In this document: positions 1,849 to 12,756 of the stretch, piece after piece
Position numbering within the stretch: position 1 is the first letter of the stretch
How the letters are laid out: each line of letters starts with the position of its first letter
Origin: Paramicrosporidium saccamoebae KSL3
Taxonomy: Eukaryota > Fungi > Cryptomycota
DNA: 32,000 nucleotides
Assembly (NCBI GenBank): GCA_002794465.1
Contig: MTSL01000041.1
Span: forward strand, 77,113-109,112
Direction of reading: 5' to 3'
The notes under the pieces: model-generated
Told to the model about the DNA's origin: nothing
Databases searched by the model: none
The model's input: the letters and a program-made list of their open reading frames with translations, nothing else
Program-made: the position numbers and the translations under genes

Positions 1849-3120
1849 ATGAGGCAGTTGTACGCTAATCTGGAGAATCGTTTCTTGATATCTCCCAAGC
1901 TCATTTACTTTGCGGTGAGTACGGCCTACTATGCCCTGTACCTGTTCCGCGCAAAATTCATCAAAGACTATCTGAGACTGGATGATACAACATATGGGGA
2001 CATTTCTGGTGTCATGGCCATAGTGGGCTTTGCAGGTGCTACTCTCTGGAGCTGGATAGGGGACAATTCAGGACGCCATCGACTGGTTCTGATGATAATC
2101 TGTCTGGGAATGTCGCTATCGGCCGAATTTCTGTACTTTATTGCGCCGGTCCAGGACGAATTGACGAGAACAGTGTTAACGGCAGTGGTCTTTGGGCTTT
2201 ATGCCATATTTGTGGGAGGAATGATGCCGCTGGCGGACTATCTAGTGTTGAAGATTCTGTCTAACCGGCCGGGCTTTAGTCGCGATCTCTACAGTCGGCA
2301 ATGTCTGTTCGGGACGGCTGCTTACGGAGTCACCAGCTATTTGGTGGGTTTATTAGTCAAGGCGTTCAAGTTGCCAATAGTGTTCTTTGTTCTACCAGCA
2401 AGTTCTCTATTTGCAGTGGGAATTTTGTTTCTGTGTGCGCCTGCAGATCAGCCCAAGTCTTGGGGCATGACCCCCCAACCAACCACCAAGGAACCAGAAG
2501 CGGCCGTTACTCAACATCCATTGAAAACATTGCTGTTGAATGCAAATTTCGTGTTCATGCTGTTTGTCGTCTTCCTGACGGGCAGTGCCCGTGCCGTCAT
2601 GACCACTTTTCTTGCCAAATATTGGGACGAAACGATGCGTCTCACTGAAACTCAGGTTGGAACAGCCGCCAATTTCGGCATCTTTTTGGAGATTGCCATC
2701 TTTGCAGTTGGTCCGCTGTGTATACGACTGTTCGGAGTGTATTGGATGCTGTTGATGGCACAGCTGGCAATGGTATTGCGTGCCTGGGCATATGTTGGCA
2801 TGTCGAACACGACCTCGGTCTATTTTGTATATAGCGTAGAGCTTCTCAAGGGCGTAGGATTCGGCTTTACACAAGTTTCTGGGACAAAGGTGGCCATGGA
2901 GAGTGCACCGGACGAACTAAAGGCCACTGCCCAGGCGCTATATTCTGCATTCTACTCGCAACTGCCTCTGGTTCTGACAGCGTTTGCAGGCGGGCGATGC
3001 TATCAGCTTTACGGATCGGATCTGTTGTTCAAGATTACGGCTGTAATGGCCTCCCTGGCTCTGGGATTGTGCACAATGAAGTATCTGGCCGATGGTAGTT
3101 TATTTAAACGACATAATTAA
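1849..3120 (+). CDS. MFS transporter, MFSD6-like (423 aa)
   Basis: About 12 TM segments, with LWSWIGDNSGRHRLVL (motif A region) and VELLKGVGFGF...APDELKATAQALY typical of the MFS_1_like/MFSD6 group. The track start at 1822 is TTG; the first ATG is at 1849. Confidence 0.85.
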   Translation: MRQLYANLENRFLISPKLIYFAVSTAYYALYLFRAKFIKDYLRLDDTTYGDISGVMAIVGFAGATLWSWIGDNSGRHRLVLMIICLGMSLSAEFLYFIAPVQDELTRTVLTAVVFGLYAIFVGGMMPLADYLVLKILSNRPGFSRDLYSRQCLFGTAAYGVTSYLVGLLVKAFKLPIVFFVLPASSLFAVGILFLCAPADQPKSWGMTPQPTTKEPEAAVTQHPLKTLLLNANFVFMLFVVFLTGSARAVMTTFLAKYWDETMRLTETQVGTAANFGIFLEIAIFAVGPLCIRLFGVYWMLLMAQLAMVLRAWAYVGMSNTTSVYFVYSVELLKGVGFGFTQVSGTKVAMESAPDELKATAQALYSAFYSQLPLVLTAFAGGRCYQLYGSDLLFKITAVMASLALGLCTMKYLADGSLFKRHN

Positions 3121-3135
3121 TTCCATTGTAAGTTA

Positions 3136-4299
3136 ATGAAGTGGCAGTTAGTGCTGACTGTGGTTTCAGCCAAAAGTCTATTAGTATTGCATGACGGAAC
3201 GGTAGATGAGGGACTGGTGAGCTGGCTTAATGGTGAAGACGCGGCAGATTTGTTCAATGTGAAAAACTCTGACACTCCTTACTCTCTGATTGACCCGTAC
3301 AGTGACAAACTCAGCTATGAAAACCTGCTGATGGTGACGACACAACTTCCCGCTAGCGTATCGAATGAGCAGTTTGTGGAATATGCAAAACGTGGAGGAA
3401 ATGTACTATGGATGTTGCCCATGGAGCATGCTTCATTGAAGAATAGGACGGTCAAGCTAGCGGCGGAGTTTGGACGCGAGTTGGACGTCCAACCACCCAG
3501 TGTGATGGATTATACCGACAAGGACGATTCCACAAATACAACCGTGAGAATGGTTCCAGAGACGGCAACTCGAGTCTTTGGAAAAGGCGGAATGCTTCGA
3601 TATCGAGGACGTTCACATCGGTTGATTTCGGGAAATCCGCTTGTATTTCCAGTAATCACCGCCCGAAAGGAAGCAATTGCAGTATGTCCTCCCACCGTGG
3701 GATTGGGTCAATGCACTCCATCCTTTGGGGCAGACAATGTGCTCGTCAGTGCCCTGCAAACGCGATTAAACTCGCGTATCACTCTCATCTCCTCTGATGG
3801 ATGGCTTCGAGAGCGGAACAGTGCAGCCCGTCGATTGGCTGATTGGACCTTTCAACGAAGCGGTCAATTGACCATTGAATCCTATCAACATGTGAATCTG
3901 GAAGGACGTTCCAGTTATCGGATTGGTGATCGGATGGAATTGACTGTCTGTCTAAAGCTAGATGGAAAGCCAATGCAACCAACGGACATGCAGATGGAGC
4001 TAACAATGATGGATGCATGGGTCAGGGCTGATCTTCATCCCGTGGGAGATTGTTTGAGCACGGGACCCGTTAAATTGCCCGACCGATATGGCACCTTTAC
4101 ATTAAGCATGCGATATCAACGAAAGGGTTGGCCCCATCTGATGCGCAAGGAAAAGTTTATTATCCGTCCAGTGCATTATGAGGAGGCAGTCCGATTCATG
4201 CTCTCAGCAATGCCATATTACATGTCCTGGATTGCCATGATGGCCACCTCGGCCTTTTTAGTCTTTCCCTTTATCTTTCCATCAGAAAAGCGAGGATAA
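3136..4299 (+). CDS. WBP1: Oligosaccharyltransferase 48 kDa subunit (WBP1/OST48/DDOST), 387 aa
   Basis: KLPDRYGTFTLSMRYQRKGWPHL...IRPVHYEEAVRFMLSAMPYYMSWIAMM matches the DDOST C-terminal motif. It has a short signal peptide, one C-terminal TM and a basic tail (EKRG). Confidence 0.9.
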   Translation: MKWQLVLTVVSAKSLLVLHDGTVDEGLVSWLNGEDAADLFNVKNSDTPYSLIDPYSDKLSYENLLMVTTQLPASVSNEQFVEYAKRGGNVLWMLPMEHASLKNRTVKLAAEFGRELDVQPPSVMDYTDKDDSTNTTVRMVPETATRVFGKGGMLRYRGRSHRLISGNPLVFPVITARKEAIAVCPPTVGLGQCTPSFGADNVLVSALQTRLNSRITLISSDGWLRERNSAARRLADWTFQRSGQLTIESYQHVNLEGRSSYRIGDRMELTVCLKLDGKPMQPTDMQMELTMMDAWVRADLHPVGDCLSTGPVKLPDRYGTFTLSMRYQRKGWPHLMRKEKFIIRPVHYEEAVRFMLSAMPYYMSWIAMMATSAFLVFPFIFPSEKRG

Positions 4300-4530: not shown

Positions 4531-7370
4531 TTACAGGTAGCCATCAGTCGAGATTGGTCGGACAGACAGATAGAAATCATCAAAGAATGCAGCACCGCGG
4601 GGGGCAACCAACCAAGCCCACACTTCCAATGCTACTAAGGGGGACCTTGAGGCCGACATGACCAATCCGGTACTAAAGGCCATGGGCTGCCATTTTGTCT
4701 CCTCATATGGATCCCAACCGGAATAAAATTCTTGCACTTTGTCAGCCCATACATAGCGCAATCGGAGTTGGAGGGAGAGTTGGGCCGGTGGTCCAAAGAG
4801 TCGATCAACCCGCGTCCAGGCAGACACGCTAATCTGGCAAGCCATGGTATGACATTCAGAAGGCAATTCATCAACCGGGATGGTTTGATAGATGCCCCGT
4901 CCAACTGGAGTATCTGGTCCAGCTCCAATGTATATTGATATGGCATAGTCATCAGGATGGAGTGACGCCGTGTGGTGTGCTTTGCGGGCCGGAATGGCAA
5001 CTTCAGAGGGCAAAGAGTCAGCGGGACGGAGTGCCACTAATGCGGCACTGGTGCCAAGGGATCGTTCCCAATAATCATCGTTTAAATAGAAATTGCCATT
5101 TAGCACCAAATTCCGTTCATCATAGTACGGCGGGGTTCTGATTAGTAGCTCCTTGCCGGATGGATGGACGACTGTGTGATTTCCAGGTCGGACCAACAGT
5201 CGATAATAACGCTCCGGGTCCAACCCCGTAATTAGGGCGTGCTTGGGCGCAATTGGACTCGAATGAGAGGGCTCCACATAATGGCTGAACGTCAAATCGC
5301 CCGGTTGATCATCGTCGGTGGTTTCAGTAATGTCAAAGACATCAATTTGGTACAAATGATAGTCAATCTTGCTGGCCCATTTAAACTCGACAGAGAAGGG
5401 TTGCATGTCATACACACGCACATTGTCAACATCGTCGGGATCAATCTCTACAAATCAATACCAATCAGATAGAATCATTTACCTTGGATGGCCATGGTGG
5501 TCATTCCAAAGACGGACAAGGTGTCCAGAGAATGTTTCTGCAATGCCATTTTCAGAAATCCCCAGACACGCGACCTCATCCGATCATAGGGTGTCTTATT
5601 TAGCCAATGCGGGTCCTGTCGATGGGTTAGCTCCACGGAGCGGCAATTGGCCACCTTTATGTCTGCCTCCATAGCCCGTAGGAAAAAGTCTTCGTGTTCG
5701 CCCAGCTTGAGGATGGGATCCCATCGAATCTTCTCCAGCACAACTCTTCGGGCAACAAAAATGTTGGGCACCAAGTCAACACGCACACAGGTGCTGCCTG
5801 GGATGCCTCCACGATCACCATGGATTAGATGCACTTGACGGTCCCTCCTCTCAAGCAACCCGACATAGTTAAAGCCGTGTTGATTGCGATCGGCAGGACT
5901 ACTGGCAGCCACAATGTCTAATCGGTTGGAGATTAATTGGTGGACCAAATAACCCAAATCGCTATGTTCTGTAAACACGAAATCGTCATCGAGAATCATC
6001 ATTAGGGGCGTCTCTACCTTGTCAACCATAATATTGCGTGCCTCAGATAGACCGGTGTCATAGGGCAGCGGGAGATAGGTAAAGCCGCGTTTGGGTCCAG
6101 CCGGAGTGTCAAAGGCTTGGGAACCATCATTGGCTACCAAAATTGGCAAGTTGGGATAGTACTGACGAAGGGACGAGACCAGCTCAAACACCTTGTGCAT
6201 CCGGTCCATCGTCTTGACCGTCACAGTCAGTAAGGCCGACAAGTTGTAAATGGACACAATAGTGGTAGTGCCATCCATCTCAGCTTTGACAGTAGTTATT
6301 CCGAACAACGGATCAGGAGTCACTGTTACTGTGGAGAGGCACTGATTAATCTCTGCTACCGAGTCTCCAGAGCAGCTTGAGGGCGAAATCTTGCCAAAGT
6401 CAACTTCCAGTTGGACCGTCGACTTGGAGCTGGCTCTAACGTCCAAGTGGATGGAAGTGCCGTCAGTGACATGGTAAGCCACTGATCCCTCCCGCAGTAT
6501 ATCCATAATGCTCTCCTTTTCCACTGAAATGTTTTTGGTTTGGGCCCCAAAGAAATGCAGACTCACAGCCCGTCTCTTTATCCGTTCCAGCATTTCTCGT
6601 GCCGAAATTCCCTCTGGAGCAGCTTTAAACAATTGCGTGGCCTCTTTGTAGTTTACCGGATAGAATACTTCCGATGGCAATTGTATCACTAAATCCCTTG
6701 AAACTTGTTTGCTGGCCATTGTGATGGCTCTCGGTCCGGCATGGTTGAATACGGTTGGATCATATGCCCCTCCAAATCCAATTTCAAGAGCCCGTTTTAG
6801 CAGCTGCGAACCGCGCTCAGCAAGCATCACTCCGGGTGCCAAATACATTCCCCCCGTCAGACACCAATCGCATGTTTCAGGGACACGATCACGGCCGATG
6901 ACAGTGCGTCCAGCGGATGGACCGACAAGCCATTCCTGTATGGGCATTGGTCGCAGTAGCAGAGCATCAAAATCGGAATAGACTCCGCCGTCGCGATAAA
7001 GCAGAGTGAAGCGCAAGAGATCCGTCAAATGAGAATAGTAATAAGGACCAGTTTTCCATTTTTCATGGTTCTCCAGCCAGACAGTGGCTTCCTCAGACAC
7101 TTGGGCTGCCAATGTCAAAAATTCTTCGTCAATCGTCACAAGGTCCATAGAATAACCAGCCTCATAGAACGGACGCAATATCATGCGCCAGTTGGCCCAA
7201 TTAGTGTCAGTGATATAGAGCCGCAGGTGCCAATTCGGATGGTGATGAAAATAGGATTGAAGCACCTGCAAATGTCGGGGTCGCAAGGTAAAGGCAGGTG
7301 TGGTCCACATCATGTGCAACAGCATTCCATGGACACATTCCACAAACAGCACAAACACAAGAGCAAGCAT
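4531..7370 (-). CDS. Multidomain glycosyltransferase: signal peptide + GT32 (A4GALT-like) + GT12/B4GALNT-like + FN3 + CBM-like domain; exons 7370-5483 and 5447-4531, 934 aa
   Basis: A 35-nt GT-AG intron (5482-5448) joins track ORFs 5475..7394 and 4531..5421 in frame (CAA G|AG ATT GAT). GT32: HLTDLLRFTLLYRDGGVYSDFD and LPSEVFYPVNY...SLHFF. B4GALNT-like: YNLSALLTVTVKT...ARNIMVDKVETPLMMILDDDFVF. FN3: ITGLDPERYYRLLVRPGN. CBM-like: NLVLNGNF...GIYQTI...AFFDDFYL. The track start at 7394 is TTG; the first ATG is at 7370. Confidence 0.8.
5448..5482 (-). other. Spliceosomal intron, 35 nt
   Basis: GTAAATGATTCTATCTGATTGGTATTGATTTGTAG; removing it restores a continuous frame. Confidence 0.8.
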
Positions 7371-7678
7371 GTGATGAATGGAGATGTAAAACAAACGAGG
7401 TTCACCAAACGAACAATGAGAGGCGTATTTACCGAAACGGGAACGTTTATAACATACAATTGGCTTTATTGAGTTGCTACCATGCTACCATGAGACCATG
7501 AGTGTAATGACAGAAATACAAAAGTGATTGTTACTTTAGGCGTGATCATTGACTTGATCGTTCCATATTTATACTTACAGATCCTATCACTATAGCTCTA
7601 TACCTTATACCCTATACCCACACATCTATCTCTACAACTCTTCACTGACCCGCTGATTCGTTAAATCGCTGACCCACC

Positions 7679-10600: not shown

Positions 10601-11172
10601 CACTCCTCGCACCACAAAATAACCGCCCGGATCGAGGGGACATTCGCCCATTTTGGCAAATTCCCGTTCTTCTCGCGCCTTGGCCAATTGGCAATGCGAG
10701 CTCCTCAGCATGATGGGCATCCTTCCCACCGTTATCCCTTTTCGTAGCACAATCTGTCGTCCTCGGACATACTCGATATCCACCATAATAGGTGCAGCAT
10801 AAGTCAGGTCCCGTAGTCGGCATTCCTGGGGAGTGACGTGGTAAGTCACCATATTCTCCTCCACCGTCGGCTGTCCAACATAAATGTCCGTGTAGCGCAA
10901 GTAAAAGTGCGGGTCCACGTCGCTGTCCACTTTTTCGTTGGCCGCTAGGATCTTGCGCAGTTCCACGTCCACAAAATAGTTGAAAGAGTCAATATGCTGT
11001 TTGACCAGTCCCTTGACCTTGAGAAAGGCCGGCACCAATAGCCATTTGTCCTACACCGGTTACACATGGTAGCATTCCATACCTCAATGCTCTTGACGGG
11101 TGCATCTATAGACAGACCACCGTATTTGGCATTGTTGTCATAATTGTCCAAAAAATCTTTACTCTCTTCCAT
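7679..11172 (-). CDS. RPC2: RNA polymerase III second-largest subunit; exons 11172-11083 and 11050-7679 (alternative ATGs at 11196 and 11241)
   Basis: [77 protein letters not shown] and the C-terminal zinc-binding Cys residues are present. A 32-nt intron at 11082-11051 (GTATGG...GTGTAG) joins APVKSIE to DKWLL. Confidence 0.96.
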
Positions 11173-11524: not shown

Positions 11525-12756
11525 CTACTGAACGTTGACGGCGACTTTACGCGCTCGGAATGACCATGTTCGGTACACAGTCTGATGCATAGAATGCATG
11601 TTTTGTGCATACGTCGATTCCCCAAATTGCTCATGTTCAATCTCCAATCCCACCCGCTTGCATAGCAATCGAATCTCTTCCACCGATAGTTCAATGGATG
11701 GCTCCTTAGCGTGGCCCTCGAAATGGTAGAGGAGTGGCCCCGTGTTTACCCATACCCCGCCTGTCCGTAGTAATGCATGGATCAACTCAATGTATCGCAC
11801 AATGTTTTTTGCAGTGTCGATAAAGTAGCAGGTGACAATAGCATTCCATTCTTCCTGCTGATCCTCATAGACTTCCAGAAAATCACCGGCCACCATGGAA
11901 AAATCTGCAGTGGAACCTTCAATCATCACGTCGGGGATGTGCACCTTTCTAAACTGATCCTCCAGTCTGACAGTATTGGAGAATGGAAGCGCAAATGGAC
12001 AAACGTGCATCTCATTCGGCTTCAAGTGGCGTGTCAGAAACATTTCAGCAGTCAGTAACATGAAGAGTGAAAATTCATTCCCTTGACATTTGAACCCTAC
12101 TCGATCAAAAGGTGCCATCGTTCAGTACCTTTTTGGGAAATCTCATAAGCAAGCCGGCCGAGACCTGCTCCAGGCACAAGAACAGCCGTATCTCCCCGAC
12201 CATTCGGAAATTCCGTGTCCAATTCTGTGTATAAAAAGGCATATGTGGCCTGTCGTTCCGCTGCCCCTTCATCACTCCAATCCCGCATTACCTGCCGAAG
12301 TAGACTCCTCAGACTTTCACTTTCCGTTTGAGTAAGAACCACGTCCGATGCGTTAACGCTAATAGTTCTTTCATCAGTCTTGGAAACGACATTGGCAGTG
12401 TCTTGAAATTCCAACACAGTTCGATGAACGGCAATGACTGCGTCGTAAAATTTCTGATTTTCCAGAGTGGCAGCCTCCACCCTGCTGAGCTTCTCTGCAT
12501 ATTCTGGAATTAATTTCTGGTGTTGCTCAGAGAGTGCCTCGTAGTCTCCGTTATATTTTTTCAGCGACCTTTGAGTATTACTTGCAAATGAGGAGAATGC
12601 TCGTATGATACGAATGAAATGCTCCTCTTCCAGCATCACTTCGTCTTGGGTCAATTTCGACTCTGGATGGGGAGGGAAAGGAACATTATAGTCTAGATTT
12701 CTGCAACCATGACTCAATCCGCCGAACTCACTGCAGCCATGGTCGGGATGGCCCAT
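11525..12756 (-). CDS. CARNMT1: Carnosine N-methyltransferase-like (N2227 family); exons 12756-12129 and 12096-11525, 399 aa
   Basis: RQVMRDWSDEG, VLVPGAGLGRLAYEI, CQGNEFSLFML, AGDFLEVY, IVTCYFIDTAKN and WVNTGPLLYHF are present. A 32-nt intron at 12128-12097 (GTACTG...GAGTAG) restores the frame. Confidence 0.92.

Follow-up and report, generated by a model that had tools for sequence, protein, structure and literature searches.

A GT32 and GT12-type domain fusion in Paramicrosporidium saccamoebae and chytrids as a candidate dual glycosyltransferase

Here, we describe a gene on the minus strand of a 32,000-nucleotide (nt) stretch of contig MTSL01000041.1 (hereafter the window, to which all coordinates refer) from Paramicrosporidium saccamoebae, a rozellomycotan parasite living in amoeba nuclei. 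Its spliced product of 934 amino acids (aa) comprises, in this order, a hydrophobic N-terminus, a glycosyltransferase (GT) domain of family GT32, a module resembling the GT12 enzyme B4GALNT1, a fibronectin type III (FN3) domain and a C-terminal beta-jelly-roll (Table 1). With moderate confidence, and judging from sequence, we favor a role as a lumenal dual glycosyltransferase that would attach a beta-linked N-acetylhexosamine (HexNAc) and an alpha-linked sugar to the same glycan.

Gene model and deposited annotation

Two minus-strand open reading frames (ORFs) lie at the locus in different frames, 5475..7394 (639 aa) and 4531..5421 (296 aa). An earlier note, made from the letters alone, had joined them through a 35-nt intron, and we reproduced its junction (5483/5447), protein length and frame: exons 7370..5483 and 5447..4531 yield a coding sequence of 2805 nt with zero internal stops. 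The splice boundary in the DNA reads ..ATCCAAG / gtaaatgattctatctgattggtattgatttgtag / AGATTGAT.., and its wider context ..ACCATGGCCATCCAAG / gtaaatgattctatctgattggtattgatttgtag / AGATTGATCCCGAC... In an alignment of the spliced protein with 12 relatives, the junction is gap-free and colinear in every one of them. Four are uninterrupted metagenome ORFs (978-1068 aa, 47-53% identity) and the other eight are more distant (32-38% identity), most of them from named chytrid species. All 12 run from ..FGxxTMALQ through ..(P)xxxxxIxxVRVxDLQPFSV.. to a tail ending in ..RGxxxFDDFxL. From these comparisons, a single gene spanning 7370..4531 appears very probable.

The deposited annotation of MTSL01000041.1 instead calls two separate genes of 674 aa and 291 aa, which would correspond to a GT32+GT12 enzyme next to an independent protein. 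The first 67% of our protein is identical (100%) to PSACC_00402 of P. saccamoebae. The 674-aa model runs into the 35-nt intron and ends in ..MAIQGK and a stop codon, and the 291-aa model (5406..4531, P0087; no Pfam match) takes as its start an internal methionine within the FN3 domain, its ORF staying open upstream through VDNVRVYD. A two-gene arrangement is also at odds with the relatives, all of which, including the intron-free metagenome ORFs, carry the fused tail in the same order. Furthermore, the same annotation splits a neighboring gene, CARME (carnosine N-methyltransferase; 12756..11525, minus strand), into genes of 219 aa and 178 aa at an unrecognized intron; removal of this 32-nt GT..AG intron (12128..12097) restores one 399-aa frame spanning the conserved GFKCQGNEFS motif. 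We therefore consider two genes highly improbable at the fusion locus. The split of CARME suggests that introns of 32-35 nt were systematically missed in the annotation of this assembly. The nearby gene for RNA polymerase III subunit 2 likewise has a 32-nt GT..AG intron (11082..11051), immediately ahead of a conserved protein stretch, and introns this short are normal for the region. Introns and glycosyltransferases go unmentioned in the genome paper of P. saccamoebae. The models given here correct the public annotation at two genes that it had split, the fusion gene and CARME.

Translation may start at ATG 7370 or at the upstream start of the GenBank model. In the latter, PSACC_00402 begins at 7549 and its first exon, of 15 nt (MITPK), is followed by a 50-nt intron (7534..7485; together 7549..7484, minus strand), which adds a basic N-terminal tail of 43 aa. 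This upstream piece is absent from the aligned relatives: the rozellid-like P0002, P0003 and P0007 begin at the hydrophobic segment, and the chytrid orthologues carry their own long N-terminal extensions. The hydrophobic segment itself comprises 13 residues, is modeled as a low-confidence helix (aa 2-13) and recurs at the matching position in relatives. The signal peptide originally proposed thus stands as a hydrophobic N-terminus that may be either cleaved or retained as an anchor.

Domain assignments

The predicted model of the whole protein has a mean predicted local distance difference test score (pLDDT) of 82.3. Domain 1, modeled mostly at pLDDT 85-95, exceeds the cut-offs of two Pfam models, Gly_transf_sug (PF04488; aa 35-147, 37.2 bits against 23) and Gb3_synth (PF04572; aa 185-287, 28.0 bits against 22.3), the latter also being found in most orthologues. 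Its identity to chytrid orthologues is 36-46%. The stretch YYYSHLTDxLRFxxLxxxGGVYSDFDA, which includes the first DxD motif, is invariant across the 13-sequence alignment, and its DxD lines up with the DMD in the donor-site motif of Och1, a GT32 enzyme of solved structure (9n3s). By sequence, then, domain 1 belongs to GT32, in the branch bearing a Gb3-synthase region, as first proposed. Its likeness to A4GALT (Gb3 synthase) and A4GNT comes from the two Pfam matches and the shared invariant motif (S/T)DxxRxxxLxxxGGxYxDxD rather than from a direct alignment. As a difference from that branch, the nearest named non-fused relatives found are fungal GT32 proteins of Pucciniomycotina yeasts. Among the nearest non-fused relatives are also large fusions of EOS1, a GT31 galactosyltransferase and a GT32/Gb3_synth domain (P0118 and P0093), a further uncharacterized architecture with several GTs; of these, P0118 is from Rhodosporidiobolus microsporus, a Pucciniomycotina yeast.

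Domain 2, which contains a Pfam Glycos_transf_2 match (aa 398-501), most closely resembles human B4GALNT1 (GM2/GD2 synthase; 9h6j, 9h6k and 9h6l) among solved structures. B4GALNT1 was the best sequence match of this kind (9h6j; phmmer E=4.6e-20, family profile E=5.1e-32) and took Foldseek ranks 1-4 (9h6k/l/j, E=2.9e-22; following match 4e-11), and hhalign against the platypus protein gave a probability of 99.5%. The motifs listed in the earlier note were all recovered in the alignment with 9h6j: YNLSALLTVTVKT/YNISALVTIATKT, GLSEARN/GWFAGRN, DDDFVFT in both, NIFVAR/NFFLAR and HEDFF/HLEFF. Both DxD motifs that the note reported intact are invariant in the family. Identity of the GT12-like domain to chytrid orthologues is 42-48%.

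We then placed the residues of domain 2 on the human enzyme, in which native numbering equals the 9h6j chain numbering plus 34. The UDP-GalNAc site, the limits of the non-catalytic lower domain (130-257) and the roles of D356 and D358 have been described for B4GALNT1, and K284, N437, R457, Y501 and R505 are UDP-GalNAc-binding residues reported to be conserved in GT12 only (PMC12217166). The equivalents of K284 (K386), R288 (R390), D356/D358 (D461/D463), N437 (N536) and H483 (H583), six of eight published site positions, are all conserved and invariant in the family. Y501 and R505 would correspond to Y595 and R599, which lie beyond the hidden Markov model (HMM) alignment and whose register is ambiguous; the invariant Y595-D-R-M-R599 mirrors Y-S-R-F-R in platypus B4GALNT1. 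The two enzymes share the GT-A core, the DDDF motif and the tryptophan of the W491 loop, and may share this Y-x-R-x-R helix motif and part of the lower domain. For the latter, the family profile extends the match to 9h6j back to chain residue 172 (native ~206) and includes an LNxxL motif, although this is the weakest part of the B4GALNT1 match, with low column confidence. The two proteins differ in that they are 22-25% identical, R457 is replaced, an FN3 domain and a jelly-roll are added, and a whole GT32 domain stands in place of the N-terminal 130 residues that wrap around the B4GALNT1 dimer. The acceptor must also differ from that of B4GALNT1, since no fungus is known to produce the sialylated acceptors that B4GALNT1/2 use.

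The similarity to the animal enzyme stands, but it is not exclusive. In searches with a domain HMM built from fungal sequences, platypus B4GALNT1 scored 102 bits and many standalone microbial enzymes 110-250 bits. We therefore name the domain GT12-type, by sequence and fold likeness, rather than animal-like. A phage-encoded relative, P0085, is 32% identical over the whole catalytic core and shares DDDF, KLAEHTDFF and the Y..R.R helix, but lacks both the GT32 domain and the lower domain and has threonine at the position equivalent to K284. This standalone GT12-like enzyme of 522 aa (L002 and L003, 8001..9569) is encoded by a phage genome that also carries ERF, SSB and portal genes. Its gene neighbors are LicD, methyltransferase, epimerase, ParB_N, PALP and radical-SAM genes, and the region could be a surface-glycan or DNA-modification module.

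Two further GT12-like fusions were encountered. P0073 (L006) combines three GT domains, GT2, Caps_synth/GT32-like and GT12-like, and adjoins ParB_N, and P0084, from an ENA metagenome (1286 aa), carries an FKRP-type stem with GT6 and GT12-like domains.

The proposed FN3 domain was borne out by family-profile matches to contactin, Dscam and FN3con structures (E=5e-4 to 1e-2), by PF00041 in the chytrid orthologues P0014, P0015, P0024 and P0025, and by seven predicted strands within aa 636-733; the 934-aa protein itself gave no match to Pfam fn3. For the C-terminal module, a carbohydrate-binding module (CBM) of CBM4/9-like type had been suggested, of which the fold was upheld and the family was not. 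Its nearest folds by Foldseek are CBM61, CBM16, the sugar-binding domain of Fbs1, CBM22 and CBM44, with modest scores (E 1e-5 to 1e-3 and a template modeling (TM) score of about 0.5 overall; CBM61 E=8e-6; CBM16 TM 0.54-0.57 at a root-mean-square deviation (rmsd) of 3.5-3.8 A). Membership of a CBM family at the sequence level was rejected, because neither the Pfam search (zero matches at E<=10 across seven family members) nor the PDB sequence search gave a CBM. The predicted tail is thus CBM-like at the level of fold, with modest scores. It is 15-25% identical to its chytrid counterparts, as against 36-48% for the two GT domains.

Table 1 Features of the fusion gene and its predicted product in the window
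Feature	Position	Strand	Remarks
Coding exon 1	5483..7370	-	ATG at 7370; aa 1-629 and first base of codon 630
Intron, spliceosomal	5448..5482	-	35 nt; GTAAAT...CTGAT...TTGTAG, with GT..AG ends and CTGAT as branch-like motif
Coding exon 2	4531..5447	-	aa 630-934; stop codon 4531..4533
Hydrophobic N-terminal segment MLALVFVLFVECVHG	7326..7370	-	Signal peptide or type II anchor
GT32 domain, aa 16-295	6486..7325	-	Pfam Gly_transf_sug and Gb3_synth region
GT32 DxD motif D133-F-D135 (YSDFD, aa 131-135)	6966..6974	-	Invariant in 13/13 aligned members
Beta-rich module, aa 310-372	6255..6443	-	Matches the non-catalytic lower domain of B4GALNT1
GT12/B4GALNT1-like GT-A catalytic domain, aa 373-628	5487..6254	-	Sequence, profile and fold matches
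GT12 DxD motif D461-D462-D463 (LDDDF, aa 460-464)	5982..5990	-	Equivalent to B4GALNT1 D356, D358; family-invariant
FN3-type beta-sandwich, aa 632-735	5131..5442	-	Profile matches; seven strands in model
C-terminal beta-jelly-roll, aa 742-930	4546..5112	-	Begins NLVLNGNF, ends RGAAFFDDFYL; CBM-like by fold

Distribution of the fusion and its surrounding locus

When 1.84 billion cluster representatives (clusters at 50% identity) were searched with the family profile, 691 proteins scored below 1e-30. Approximately 50 representatives span both GT modules (profile positions about 20-680), and about 15 span all four modules. The GT32+GT12 architecture occurs in at least 13 sequenced chytrid species and on many metagenome contigs, and the named members other than P. 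saccamoebae are chytrids without exception: Chytriomyces hyalinus, Chytriomyces sp. MP71, Phlyctochytrium bullatum, P. planicorne, Cladochytrium tenue, Zopfochytrium polystomum, Physocladia obscura, Entophlyctis luteolus, Quaeritorhiza haematococci, Blyttiomyces helicus, Obelidium mucronatum and Chytridiales sp. JEL 0842. Several of the chytrid copies are automatically named 'Beta-1,4 N-acetylgalactosaminyltransferase 1'. The earlier note knew of no such architecture from fungi; it is present there, and what remains of this claim is that the family, although already in public proteomes, is unstudied. Our literature searches found no paper on the GT32+GT12 family or on GT12 in fungi.

The fusion is also present in rozellid-like metagenome proteins and on other eukaryotic contigs. 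Shorter GT32+GT12 forms lie on eukaryote-like metagenome contigs, one of them adjoining RhoGAP and LRR-patatin genes. On another metagenome contig, a 939-aa fusion, P0054 (L008, 8001..10820), adjoins a STAT gene of dictyostelid type, whose product has STATa_Ig, EF-hand_12 and SH2 domains, so the fusion probably occurs in Amoebozoa as well. Word-index homology searches returned 14 matches with domain 2 alone and one with P0054; neither search gave a taxonomic name to the non-fungal clades, and the one with P0054 gave no named relatives. In a 1204-aa variant, P0049 (L004, 185..3799, and L005, 317..3931; Logan SRR25434978 and SRR25434982), Sulfotransfer_1/3 takes the place of the FN3 domain and jelly-roll at the C-terminus, which hints that some products of the family may be sulfated glycans.

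A rough neighbor-joining tree of the GT12-like domain unites all fused sequences in one cluster, separate from both the standalone enzymes and the animal sequence. The tree has no support values and includes a single animal sequence, and we used it for the clustering of the fused sequences rather than for distinguishing descent from transfer. Transfer from the amoeba host was rejected, because the protein groups with the chytrid and rozellid four-module proteins and not with the amoebozoan-like clade.

Contamination or a bacterial origin of the locus was likewise rejected, given the spliceosomal intron, the eukaryotic neighbors (RNA polymerase III subunit 2, OST48 and CARME) and the 173-kb contig. 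At 1849..4299 (plus strand), a GenBank model of 797 aa with 57 nt of intron joins an MFS_1 to an OST48 Pfam domain. Its OST48 portion forms a full ORF of 387 aa, which has a separate ATG and starts like a signal peptide at 3136, just 15 nt beyond the end of the MFS ORF (3120). This model probably represents two wrongly fused genes, or an unusually tight gene pair.

Proposed activity and significance

From their sequences, both GT-A modules are complete and probably active. The hydrophobic N-terminus would place the remaining protein in the lumen of the endoplasmic reticulum or Golgi, or outside the cell. There, the GT32 module, predicted to be retaining, would bind a UDP-sugar and metal through D133/D135 and transfer a hexose or HexNAc in alpha linkage. 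The GT12-type module, predicted to be inverting, would form a beta-1,4-linked HexNAc from a UDP-HexNAc donor, most likely UDP-GalNAc, in contact with D461/D463, K386, R390, N536, H583 and Y595/R599. We infer that the two modules act sequentially on one acceptor chain: a single round of each would give a capped disaccharide, and alternation a repeating alpha/beta disaccharide polymer, with the FN3 spacer and the jelly-roll perhaps holding the acceptor or the growing glycan.

The fusion has been retained across deep divergences in ~50 clusters at 50% identity, and since no other part of the protein is conserved as well as the two GT domains in comparisons with chytrids, selection is likely to have acted on both activities. 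It is conceivable that one module alone is catalytic and the other a structural or glycan-binding partner, as reported for some two-domain synthase subunits; nothing specific points to such a division beyond the non-conservation of R457 in the GT12-like module. We regard this as unlikely, however, in view of the two DxD motifs and nearby donor-site residues, which are invariant among members sharing 33-53% identity overall, and of the greater conservation of both GT domains relative to the remaining protein.

As regards the product of a dual transferase, polymer formation and two-step decoration seem to us about level, each a sizable minority prospect. Several known co-polymerases pair two GT domains, namely LARGE1 (GT8+GT49), EXT1/2 (GT47+GT64), the chondroitin synthases (GT31+GT7) and the Pasteurella heparosan synthase PmHS2. 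As in these enzymes, one chain unites a retaining-type with an inverting-type GT-A module, both with their DxD motifs intact, whereas the pair found here is GT32+GT12, the homology is limited to the GT-A fold, and the FN3 domain and CBM-like tail are additional. Foldseek with the whole model lists LARGE1, CHSY3-CHPF and PmHS2 directly after B4GALNT1. By analogy with LARGE, EXT and CHSY, an alternating alpha/beta glycan of galactose (Gal) and N-acetylgalactosamine (GalNAc), with the CBM-like module holding the acceptor, as the earlier note had it, is a reasonable proposal. The CBM-like tail and the sulfotransferase variant lean toward a polymeric or multivalent acceptor, and such a variant is what one would expect of a family making a modified glycan chain. 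A related arrangement exists in the GT27 polypeptide GalNAc-transferases, in which the C-terminal ricin-type lectin domain steers the enzyme to glycosylated acceptors. They too consist of a GT-A unit followed by a carbohydrate-binding module, and Toxoplasma GalNAc-T3 is among the fold matches, but their lectin is a beta-trefoil rather than a jelly-roll, and they have one GT domain instead of two.

Alternatively, the same two activities may add a single beta-1,4-HexNAc to a glycosphingolipid or glycoprotein glycan and cap it with one alpha-linked sugar, a sub-case of the dual-transferase reading with a different product. In insects, this two-step extension is shared between two proteins: a beta4GalNAc-transferase acts first, and alpha4GT1, a GT32 enzyme, acts second. 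Neither animal namesake of the modules is a polymerase; each transfers one sugar to a glycolipid. Fungal GT32 enzymes, moreover, include sphingolipid mannosyltransferases (PMC13161914), and the family-invariant W589 aligns with W491, through which B4GALNT1 inserts into the membrane and reaches lipid substrates (PMC12217166). This tryptophan and the single-transfer chemistry of the namesakes lean toward two-step decoration. Against it, the FN3 domain, the CBM-like tail and the sulfotransferase variant would be better matched to a polymeric or multivalent acceptor than to a small head group, and the phage-borne relatives lack the tryptophan, which is therefore not essential to the fold. On balance, we consider two-step decoration a possible but tentative outcome.

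Several points weigh against the dual-transferase reading. In addition to the non-polymerizing namesakes, W589 would favor a lipid-linked acceptor over a free polymer. The splice itself is predicted from homology and splice signals. In the GT12-like module, R457 is replaced by L556, with the invariant K555 adjoining, and MAFFT offsets Y595/R599 from Y501/R505 by four residues, leaving their register ambiguous. The jelly-roll reaches moderate confidence when modeled alone (pLDDT 70), and no CBM was among its PDB sequence matches. The fold likeness to LARGE1, CHSY and PmHS2 is the result expected of any GT-A pair, at an rmsd > 20 A, and the empty literature search counts on the same side.

A broader proposal, which we hold to be doubtful, is that the family synthesizes a Gal/GalNAc-type heteropolysaccharide on the surface of the spore, cyst or zoosporangium of zoosporic fungi, with the shorter forms doing likewise in amoebozoans or other protists. 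Dictyostelium secretes a gal/galNAc polysaccharide into its spore coat (PMC2115956). If the proposal were true, the glycan could be what the amoeba host recognizes when it takes up the parasite.

Together, these data describe a GT32+GT12 pair with an FN3 and jelly-roll tail that appears new among two-GT synthases, without introducing a new principle. B4GALNT1-type enzymes extend beyond animals, so that the human enzyme, whose structure was solved recently, now has non-animal homologues. Provided that both modules are active, the family would represent a fifth independent pairing of retaining and inverting GTs after LARGE, EXT, the chondroitin synthases and the bacterial heparosan/chondroitin synthases, and chytrids and rozellids would be expected to make a glycan not yet described. 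To our knowledge, almost nothing is known of the surface chemistry of these organisms beyond chitin and glucan. That a parasite of ~3,750 genes (PMC5701793) has kept the gene suggests that the glycan product matters to it, and the fusion offers a concrete, testable lead to a glycan of early-diverging fungi.

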